From: Azolla caroliniana
Lineage: Eukaryota; Plantae; Polypodiophyta
Length of the DNA stretch: 64,000 bases
Direction: 5' to 3'
Assembly: GCA_043228905.1 (NCBI GenBank)
Contig: JBHGNT010000011.1
Location: forward strand, 16,058,001 to 16,122,000
Shown: positions 18,097 to 21,000 of the stretch, piece after piece
Layout of the letters: the number at the start of each line of letters is the position of its first letter
How positions within the stretch are numbered: position 1 is the stretch's first letter
Notes under the pieces: model-generated
What the model saw: the letters and a program-made list of their open reading frames with translations, nothing else
What the model was told of the DNA's origin: nothing
Databases searched by the model: none
Position numbers and translations under genes: made by a program

Positions 18097-21000
18097 TTAG
18101 AGAAGCTTGTATCGTTTCTCTTCAATACCAGCAGCTCCCATTTGAATCTCAATAACTGTGTGCAAAGGAATCTAGAAAGCGAAGTATGAACAAATTCATA
18201 ACAGGTTACTTGCACTTTTCACAACCTATCTTTTTAGGGCTAATAAGCATGCCTTGCTATAATGAGGACCACCGACATAAACTTGGTTACAATGTTTGCA
18301 TGCCCATAGAATATTTAAAATAGTAATAATACATATTCACCCATTCTCGACCCTTTTTGGTCTGAAACATTATTTTGTTCTTTGGCAGACATAACTATCA
18401 CTTTCTTTCTCGTAATCAATCAATTTTTTTCCTGCCCGTAATCTTAACTATTTTTCTATATATCTTATTCCCATCTTGTTGTCCAAACCAGCAAGCCAGG
18501 AAAGACCTACTGGTGTTTATATGTTCCCTTTCTACTTATTTACCACTTTCTACAGCTCCTTGCTTGAAAAACTCTGGCCCTAATAAGTTTTCAATCTTAA
18601 TGAGAATTATAGTGTTACACATCATTTCACATAGCAAATTAGGTACATCTTCAAACTTACATCTATGTATGGAATTTGCTCTATTGGGTTGTCAGCAAAG
18701 TACCCATATAATGAGCGGAGAAGAGCCTACACAACAGACAATATCAATAAAATCAGGAGCTCAAAGGGTTCATTGATTATTACTAGTGGGTAAAGATTAG
18801 GGATATAACCTGATGTGTGACAATTACTACAGGTGAATGTTGTCTCTCAAGCTCAATAATAACGGGTTCCAATCTACAAAGACAAACATATCTCAAAGTG
18901 TAAGAATTCTTAAGATTGTGTGAAGGAACCCCAAGAAATTCCAATTTACCTTTGTATGACATCTAGATAAGATTCCCCACGAGGATAACGGTAACGAAGT
19001 TTATCTAATCTTCTGGCCCTGTTCAATTCTCACAAAATTAGCACAGACAATATGTGAACTTACAATTGTAATCCCACATTTGGAATACTTATGACTCACT
19101 CATATTCTTCAGGGAACTTGCTTTTAATCTCTTCATATGTCATACCATCACAGATACCAGCATTTATATCATCCAATGCTCGCCATTGAACCTAAGAAAT
19201 ATCTAGTCATCTGTTAATTTACAAGTCACTCAGATACAACTATGCATCCAAGCTTCTAAGTTCTGAAACTACCGATTGCGCCATGAGGGAGTGGAACCAG
19301 AGGTACATTATTTGATTTATTCCATATAATCACATGAAAAACCATCAGGTTTGTTAATTGAACCAACTTTGAGGATTGCACAAAATTCGTAATTACGAGT
19401 ATCAGGGCTATCGCAGCTCATGGAAAGGAACAGGGGACAAACGCGATCACAGTTACGGGGAATAGGCACAGGTAATGTGAACAGGGGCCTTTGGCAGGGA
19501 ATGTTGACAGGGTTTGGAGACATCAGTGTAACATATGGAAGGAAAATTTTGGATGGCTTTTTTTTTCACTACTTTAAATACAATGCAAGGGGGGGAATAT
19601 CACTTGCTCTTCATACAAGGGTTTGGGTCAATCTGCAAATAATGGAATACAATGTTGGAAACTGTTCTTGCTGAGAATCGTGCGACAGGGAAAGACAGCT
19701 AGAAGACACCAGCACAGCCACCCCAGATGAACGAAGGAACAACCATAAGGTTAGGTTCATCATATGAACCCTATGATTTCTCAGTAGAATGTTTACAGTA
19801 AGCAATGCCACAAGTATTGAGACATGGGAAACTAGACGTGGTATACGGCCATTGCTGCATTCTATTTGGATGGTTACTACCAAATTGACATGACATTCAA
19901 TGTGACAAAGAAGAAGAAACAAGATGATATTAGTTTTTGCAGAACAAACAAAAAAAAATCACGTGCCAAACAAGCATAAATATAAACTGGATAACGGATC
20001 TATATTATTAAAGCTATATTATATTAAACAAACACTACCAGTAACTGCTCCATTAGGAAGTATGCGCAATTGAACTTCTTTTAAGAACATCTTACTTTAG
20101 GAAATGCAATCAAGTGTGCTGCAGTGTCAGTTGTCCTTTGTAATGTGCTTGTCCAAACCTAATAAAGAACCGGTACCAGTAACTTCAATAAAGTTAATTC
20201 TTGCCAGTAAACAAATGCATATCAAAATTAAGTGATGACATCACAAGTTTTTTGATGCCAGTGAGTTGAATCAAACTAACTTTGAGATATTCATTAGTTA
20301 TGAACATCTCATAACTTACAGATGCAGTCTCTTCACTCTTAAGCCTCTCATTCATGAAATCTGCAAGTACTTTGGCGTATTTTTTACCAGTCTCACTGAT
20401 AAAGAAAACCAATGAAGATTAGAAACCACAATATCCAACCGTTGTTTCCCCAGATATATGATATCTAATGTTTCCTGTCGCTTTGTACATGAACTCAAAA
20501 CTAGCCATTTGACTTCTGCCCCTTGGATATTTTGTAGACTGTATTTAAGTATCGTATATTTATCTAATTTAATAAAATTAAAAACACCAGCTAGTGGAAG
20601 TTGGAAATGTCGAAAAACAATGGAAGATAAAAATAAATGTAGAAATACCTCAATTTCTGGTCACCACCAACATGACAATGTATGGTGCCAAAACTCTCTC
20701 CAGGCCTAGTCAAAAATATTGGGCGTGGATTTGTGTGTGTGTTGACCTACCAAAACGAGTCCAATTAGGAAACATTTATACACCTTTATATATGCCTCAT
20801 AATATATGTGAAACATGACGCATCATATATACATCTATTTTCACAACATGCCCCTATAGAGCTGATTTTTCATGATAGTAAAGCAAATAGTTATTGCAAA
20901 TATATATTATAGACACATACATGAGCATAAGTCCAAGTTTTGTGCACTTATTATGTTAAAAACAAGCAAATAAATTCAGGGTTTTGTGTCCAAATGCTAA

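Follow-up and report, generated by a model that had tools for sequence, protein, structure and literature searches.

A predicted kinase-only F2KP in the fern Azolla caroliniana: a dismantled bisphosphatase active site in an otherwise intact gene

Introduction

Fru-2,6-P2 steers plant carbon among sucrose, starch and glycolysis, and according to reviews its level is set by the bifunctional enzyme F2KP. The plant targets of Fru-2,6-P2 include cytosolic FBPase, which it inhibits, and PFP, which it activates (PMC9664233), and plant F2KP is described as bifunctional throughout (PMC9664233, PMC8162629, PMC12965863). The F2KP gene considered here lies in a 64,000-nucleotide stretch of the Azolla caroliniana genome (the window), and it raises the question of what such a gene does once the active site of its phosphatase domain has been altered. 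Automatic annotation would call it bifunctional. The initial annotation of the sequence proposed instead a maintained, monofunctional 6-phosphofructo-2-kinase that had undergone three coordinated losses in the phosphatase domain, with the dead domain possibly serving as a sensor or scaffold.

Gene structure and integrity

The F2KP gene is on the minus strand at 27708-18097. Spliced by coordinates, the model has 23 exons (2067 nt, 688 aa), and a frame check found a continuous reading frame from the start ATG at 27708 to the stop TAA at 18099-18097, with no internal stops and with GT-AG borders at 22 of 22 introns. The claim that the phosphatase exons keep their frame and splice sites is borne out by this model, and the translations of exons 20746-20649 and 19191-19100 agree with those first read. 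No second F2KP copy was found within the 64-kb window. Parts of the gene were recovered from two other assemblies: L003 (ENA assembly ERZ1034377), the same gene in a close relative, covers exons 15-18, and L001 (JGI 3300047538), a more distant orthologue, covers exons 3-6 and supports those exons of the model. The features of the gene are as follows.

27550..27708, minus strand: exon 1, with the ATG at 27708; CBM20-like N-terminus; Asp2, where Brassica F2KP has Gly
26525..26585, minus strand: exon 2, CBM20-like region; based on splice sites and frame, and the least-supported exon
26118..26395, minus strand: exon 3, end of the CBM20-like region and linker; 66/92 aa identical to the orthologue L001
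24305..24424, minus strand: exon 4, with a terminal R-x-R-S-V-S motif also present in L001; candidate phosphorylation/14-3-3 site
24007..24174, minus strand: exon 5, fast-evolving linker; dN/dS 0.75 against L001
23836..23925, minus strand: exon 6, entry to the kinase domain; the pre-kinase Ala-rich motif of Brassica is replaced
23331..23429, minus strand: exon 7, kinase P-loop with Lys300 and Thr301; PF01591, E 8.5e-14; 94% identical to Brassica
23203..23232, minus strand: exon 8, YRR motif
22794..22847, minus strand: exon 9, kinase; Arg351 retained, the same in Brassica
22574..22627, minus strand: exon 10, kinase
22351..22428, minus strand: exon 11, FDATN motif; Asp376, Thr378 and Arg384 retained
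22197..22288, minus strand: exon 12, kinase, SPDY motif; Lys418 one residue ahead of the animal and bacterial Lys
21987..22044, minus strand: exon 13, kinase; Arg441 and Tyr445 retained
21200..21274, minus strand: exon 14, kinase
21054..21101, minus strand: exon 15, end of the kinase domain; also in L003
20649..20746, minus strand: exon 16, start of the phosphatase domain; RPG in place of the RHG motif
20702..20704, minus strand: Pro503 codon, replacing the phospho-acceptor His
20684..20686, minus strand: Thr509 codon, replacing the active-site Asn
20320..20395, minus strand: exon 17, phosphatase domain
20096..20158, minus strand: exon 18, Arg554 (the 2-phosphate Arg) retained
19100..19191, minus strand: exon 19, phosphatase domain; Tyr586 retained
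19168..19170, minus strand: Asp575 codon, replacing the acid/base Glu
18950..19018, minus strand: exon 20, substrate-pocket Arg600, Lys604, Arg608 and Tyr615 retained
18810..18873, minus strand: exon 21, second His (His641) and Gln642 retained
18661..18726, minus strand: exon 22, Arg646 retained
18097..18171, minus strand: exon 23, including the stop codon

Two features of intron 3 stand apart from the coding sequence. A 98-bp tandem duplication at 25943-26135 (88% match) repeats the 3' end of exon 3 together with the donor site, which yields another potential 5' splice site 98 nt inside the intron; L001 has a single copy. The intron, 1.7 kb long in the window, also carries stop-free stretches on the minus strand at 25319-25588 (90 codons) and 24773-25009 (79 codons). 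These are probably inserted DNA and not exons, since the L001 intron is about 325 bp long and lacks them.

Relationship to plant F2KP

Exons 7 and 12 match the Pfam family 6PF2K (PF01591), and exon 19 has a weak match to PF00300 (His_Phos_1), below the cut-off for a 30-aa piece. Exons 7-10 and 17-23 align end to end with the exons of a Brassica F2KP locus (L004), with agreement of the exon borders; the comparison covers these exons, since the Brassica assembly lacks exons 11-16. The kinase exons 7-10 match Brassica at 61/79 residues (77%) and the phosphatase exons 17-23 at 119/167 (71%; P 0.36), and by this measure of sequence the phosphatase domain has not diverged further than the kinase. 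The Brassica locus (Brassica cretica, GCA_003260635.2) holds an annotated F2KP (P0013) without exons 11-16 and with exons 19-23 duplicated, a structure that looks like an assembly fault.

The first 290 residues are far more diverged from Brassica than the core. The N-terminus is weakly similar to the Brassica CBM20 region, at 30% identity over 67 aa (E 3e-8), and exon 3 gave an Atlas CBM20 lead (0.88), exons 1 and 3 having no Pfam match. The window F2KP has nothing resembling the Ala-rich motif found ahead of the kinase in Brassica, and its residue 2 is Asp, not Gly. The order of parts (an N-terminus that may be CBM20-like, then 6PF2K, then the histidine-phosphatase fold) and the testable exon borders are nonetheless those of plant F2KP. 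Judged on its alignments and exon structure, the window gene is a descendant of plant F2KP, though no typical copy.

At the end of exon 4, an R-x-R-S-V-S-V-Q motif (24305-24330; L001 805-830) is conserved in L001, whereas elsewhere in this exon the two genes match at about half of their positions. The motif may be a site for a kinase or for 14-3-3 proteins, given that SnRK1 and CPK3 phosphorylate the Arabidopsis F2KP (PMC8162629).

The bisphosphatase active site

In exon 16, the codons at the position of the RHG motif are Arg (20707-20705), Pro (CCT, 20704-20702) and Gly (20701-20699). The proposed replacement of His by Pro is therefore present in the sequence, and HMMER places the Pro on the RHG His of the human liver PFK-2/FBPase-2 (1K6M) and on the substituted Ala in 2BIF, the structure of the H256A mutant. 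The other two proposed losses were also found. The active-site Asn is replaced by Thr at 20686-20684, and an Asp at 19170-19168 falls on the catalytic Glu in the HMMER alignment, this last change having been seen in the window alone. For comparison, a word search with L002, a bacterial bifunctional gene in which RHG is present, returned 119 mostly myxobacterial proteins and one from Brassica, with no fern or moss F2KP among them. Among the 108 full-length myxobacterial PFK-2/FBPase-2 proteins that were used, the His, the Asn and the Glu are each invariant (108/108), and the window residues occur in none.

The remainder of the phosphatase site is preserved. Of the features expected of an FBPase-2, the RHG His (now Pro503), the Asn (Thr509) and the Glu (Asp575) are gone; the second His, two phosphate-binding Arg and the 6-phosphate pocket are present. 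The retained residues are His641, Arg502, Arg554, Tyr586, Arg600, Lys604, Arg608, Tyr615, Gln642 and Arg646, whose catalytic and substrate-binding roles we take to be those of the rat liver enzyme. Across the phosphatase domain, 7 of 77 deeply conserved positions are changed, and 3 of these changes fall among the 6 phospho-transfer residues (P 0.008, a post hoc value for a set picked after the data had been seen). This concentration fits a loss of catalysis with preservation of the fold. A neighbour of the RHG loop, Gly512, which is 94% conserved, is Cys in the window protein.

The three losses had been called coordinated. All three are present, but coordination is inseparable from a loss of the His followed by relaxation at the other two positions, since the Asn and the Glu would be expected to drift once the His had gone.

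One alternative is that the domain is a weak or re-routed phosphatase that hydrolyses its substrate directly, with no phospho-His, making the protein an isoform with a high kinase/phosphatase ratio and not strictly a kinase-only enzyme. None of Arg502, Arg554, His641 or the seven substrate-pocket residues has been lost, and the change from Glu to Asp is conservative. The single mutants H256A and E327D reportedly retain about one-fifth of their activity. Substitution of the His alone need not abolish activity: the title of a 1999 paper by Yuen refers to a mechanism for the bisphosphatase activity of the H256A mutant. Against residual activity, three active-site residues are changed at once, Pro would be expected to distort the RHG loop, and the nearby loop is changed too (Gly512 to Cys). 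Moreover, the His-independent route of hydrolysis depends on the Glu, which is here shortened to Asp. We consider a working phosphatase of this kind unlikely.

Three further ideas were considered and rejected. RNA editing could not readily restore the His, as the gene is nuclear and a C-to-A conversion would be required. The window contains no other version of exon 16 that encodes the His. Retention of the substrate pocket was dismissed as evidence for a sensor, because all 7 positions would survive by chance about half the time, by a hand calculation from the 7/77 conserved positions changed.

The kinase domain

The kinase motifs are intact, as first described: the P-loop, YRR and FDATN are all present, and the retained residues comprise Lys300, Thr301, YRR, Arg351, Asp376, Thr378, Arg384, Arg441 and Tyr445. 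The Lys before the SPDY motif (Lys418) stands one residue earlier than in the animal and bacterial enzymes, an offset that counts against the kinase-only reading, though it is presumably shared by Arabidopsis F2KP. Two substitutions, Arg416 to Gly and Asp462 to Asn, fall at positions that are 99-100% conserved in the bacterial set. The equivalent of Arg416 is present in the human liver enzyme and is Met in PFKFB3, which suggests that the site tolerates change.

These substitutions bear on the suggestion that the protein, barely active at both sites, serves chiefly as a regulatory subunit or scaffold, either in a hetero-oligomer with a canonical F2KP or through 14-3-3 or starch binding. Such a role would suit the rebuilt N-terminal half, from which the Gly2 and Ala-rich pre-kinase motif of Brassica are absent, the R-x-R-S-V-S motif conserved in L001 within a variable exon, and the changes at Arg416 and Asp462. 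It is harder to reconcile with the intact P-loop, YRR, FDATN, Arg384, Arg441 and Tyr445, with the 94% identity of exon 7 to Brassica, or with the Met of PFKFB3 at the Arg416 position. A mainly regulatory protein is an improbable reading of this gene.

Independent assemblies and selection

A degenerate exon-16 motif pattern that left the His codon free was run on metagenome assemblies and returned 2 contigs, L002 and L003. L003 provides an independent check of the His codon: its exon 16 is base-for-base identical to that of the window, Pro and Thr included, and there is no His at the RHG position. L003 may derive from a different species or represent a diverged homoeologue. Over exons 15-18, L003 and the window differ at 5/285 positions (4 silent and 1 Lys to Arg, classed by hand), whereas the introns differ at 54/773 (7%), and all 10 indels are intronic.

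A misread or misassembled His codon would require a single wrong base, as His to Pro is a one-base change. L003, assembled independently and 7% diverged in its introns, shares both the Pro codon and the Thr with the window, and the Glu to Asp change is at a separate site 1.5 kb away. An error is scarcely credible in light of these data, which largely refute it. The shared codon dates the loss of the His to before the divergence from L003, which amounts to about 7% at neutral sites.

In exons 16-18, 1 replacement was observed against 12.5 expected at the intron rate (P 5e-5), and a hand calculation that leaves out the ten residues demanded by the search pattern gives an expectation of about 11 with P near 2e-4. 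For the same exons, pN was 0.006 and pS 0.051, a pN/pS of about 0.1 and not near 1, in a sample of one relative, 237-285 nt and five differences. The deficit of replacements relative to intron divergence points to purifying selection on exons 15-18. The more distant orthologue, L001, is in frame over exons 3-6, with dN 0.21 and dS 0.48.

These comparisons speak to the possibility that the gene is a redundant duplicate on its way to becoming a pseudogene. Decay could account for the several substitutions near the RHG loop and for the fast N-terminus, with the dN/dS of 0.75 in exon 5. It would not be expected to leave 23 exons free of stops, frameshifts and splice losses, a strong deficit of replacements in the very exons of the dead site, or an orthologue still in frame at a dS of about 0.5. 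The frame is unbroken, the splice sites are kept and evolution is not neutral, and we regard incipient decay as very unlikely.

Other searches added little. A search of representative proteins with exon 16 returned four repeat-protein matches at 32-38% identity and was too insensitive, as canonical F2KPs were missed; a word search with exon 16 gave 0 candidates. Searches via the neighbouring PPR gene and a viral collection gave no matches.

Comparison with known systems

Plant F2KP is described as bifunctional, whereas the His, Asn and Glu are all replaced in the window gene. The closest parallel is in yeast. PFK26 is phosphatase-inactive through a His to Ser substitution, and activity comes back when the His is restored; loss of activity is not always the outcome of a degenerate motif (PMC13216928). 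Saccharomyces cerevisiae Pfk26 and YLR345W both retain a phosphatase domain that is inactivated at the RH motif, and the window gene likewise has a substituted RH-motif His within a retained phosphatase domain. While Pfk26 has the His to Ser change, the window gene combines His to Pro with Asn to Thr and Glu to Asp. Given the plant exon structure and plant N-terminus of the window gene, its loss probably occurred separately from that in yeast.

Mammalian PFKFB1-4 share the core fold and the catalytic positions of the window protein. Their ratio of activities is shifted by isoform and by phosphorylation, not by loss of the His, and the natural PFKFBs that were aligned keep RHG. Engineered phosphatase-dead His mutants (H259A, H256A) serve as tools (PMC3332096).

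The myxobacterial PFK-2/FBPase-2 proteins (Sorangium, Polyangium, Minicystis; L002, P0007-P0126) are 51% identical to the window protein over a 359-residue core. They lack the plant N-terminus and, unlike the window protein, have RHG, Asn and Glu intact in 108/108 cases. Chondromyces is also among the myxobacteria with an intact, eukaryote-like PFK-2/FBPase-2 about 50% identical to the plant core (P0007-P0126). In L002, the PFK-2/FBPase-2 gene (31-1197) adjoins an amidase-like ORF. No kinase-only plant F2KP and no fern F2KP was found in a literature search that covered few subscription papers.

Proposed function

Taken together, the sequence data suggest that the gene probably encodes a maintained, functional and long-diverged kinase-only plant F2KP that works like yeast Pfk26, with a pseudophosphatase as its C-terminal domain. 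The initial proposal of a maintained monofunctional kinase stands in so far as it rests on the intact gene, the constraint and the dismantled site; for the sensor or scaffold role that accompanied it, the analysis gave no positive support. We infer the absence of phosphatase activity, and likewise kinase activity, expression and a paralogue.

Under this model, the kinase domain, with its intact motifs, would convert Fru-6-P and ATP to Fru-2,6-P2. With Pro in place of His, no phospho-His intermediate would form and the signal would not be broken down; the Asn and Glu, which hold the phosphate and activate the water, are changed as well. The dead domain may be retained for folding, oligomerisation or regulation: the constraint on exons 15-18 is observed, and the reason for retention is a proposal. 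Such an enzyme would raise Fru-2,6-P2 with no futile cycle, so that cytosolic FBPase would be inhibited and PFP activated, and glycolysis or starch would be favoured over sucrose wherever it is expressed. Fru-2,6-P2 would have to be removed by a different enzyme, for which a canonical F2KP paralogue is the likeliest candidate.

A more elaborate version of this model is that, in a fern lineage, control of Fru-2,6-P2 is split over two genes, one of them a kinase-only F2KP whose dead domain is an allosteric sensor binding Fru-2,6-P2 or Fru-6-P and whose N-terminal control region has been rewired. We hold this version only tentatively and consider it doubtful as a whole.

If the kinase-only model is correct, a land plant would have reached the yeast solution separately, by way of a natural kinase-only isoform under purifying selection. 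The gene would then offer a plant-native tool to raise Fru-2,6-P2 and to probe what non-catalytic service the phosphatase domain provides to the kinase. The change would concern one enzyme family in one lineage, and would not amount to a new kind of system.

Genomic surroundings

The other genes and elements identified in the window, all from Pfam matches, are as follows.

2737-3012, minus strand: chalcone-isomerase-fold gene
6933-7706, plus strand: LINE zf-RVT fragment
12886-15780, plus strand: PPR gene, single exon, 964 aa, with an E motif
33913-40139, plus strand: pantothenate kinase (weak match)
51355-54003, plus strand: TBL/PMR5 acetyltransferase
58135-59441, minus strand: HMG-box gene

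There is no sign of a sugar-metabolism cluster among the Pfam-identified neighbours in the 64-kb window. A sigma-70 promoter scan was discarded, as it is not meaningful in a plant gene. Tandem arrays of 3 x 42 bp and 2 x 48 bp lie upstream of the F2KP gene, at 28115-28240 and 29261-29358, respectively. The gene is flanked by two AT-rich elements, at 17100-17550 and 31740-32305, that are rich in AAACC-type repeats and related to each other (76% over 139 bp); in the upstream element, the two termini resemble each other in inverted orientation (80% over 60 bp). Both elements are probably non-autonomous DNA transposons.
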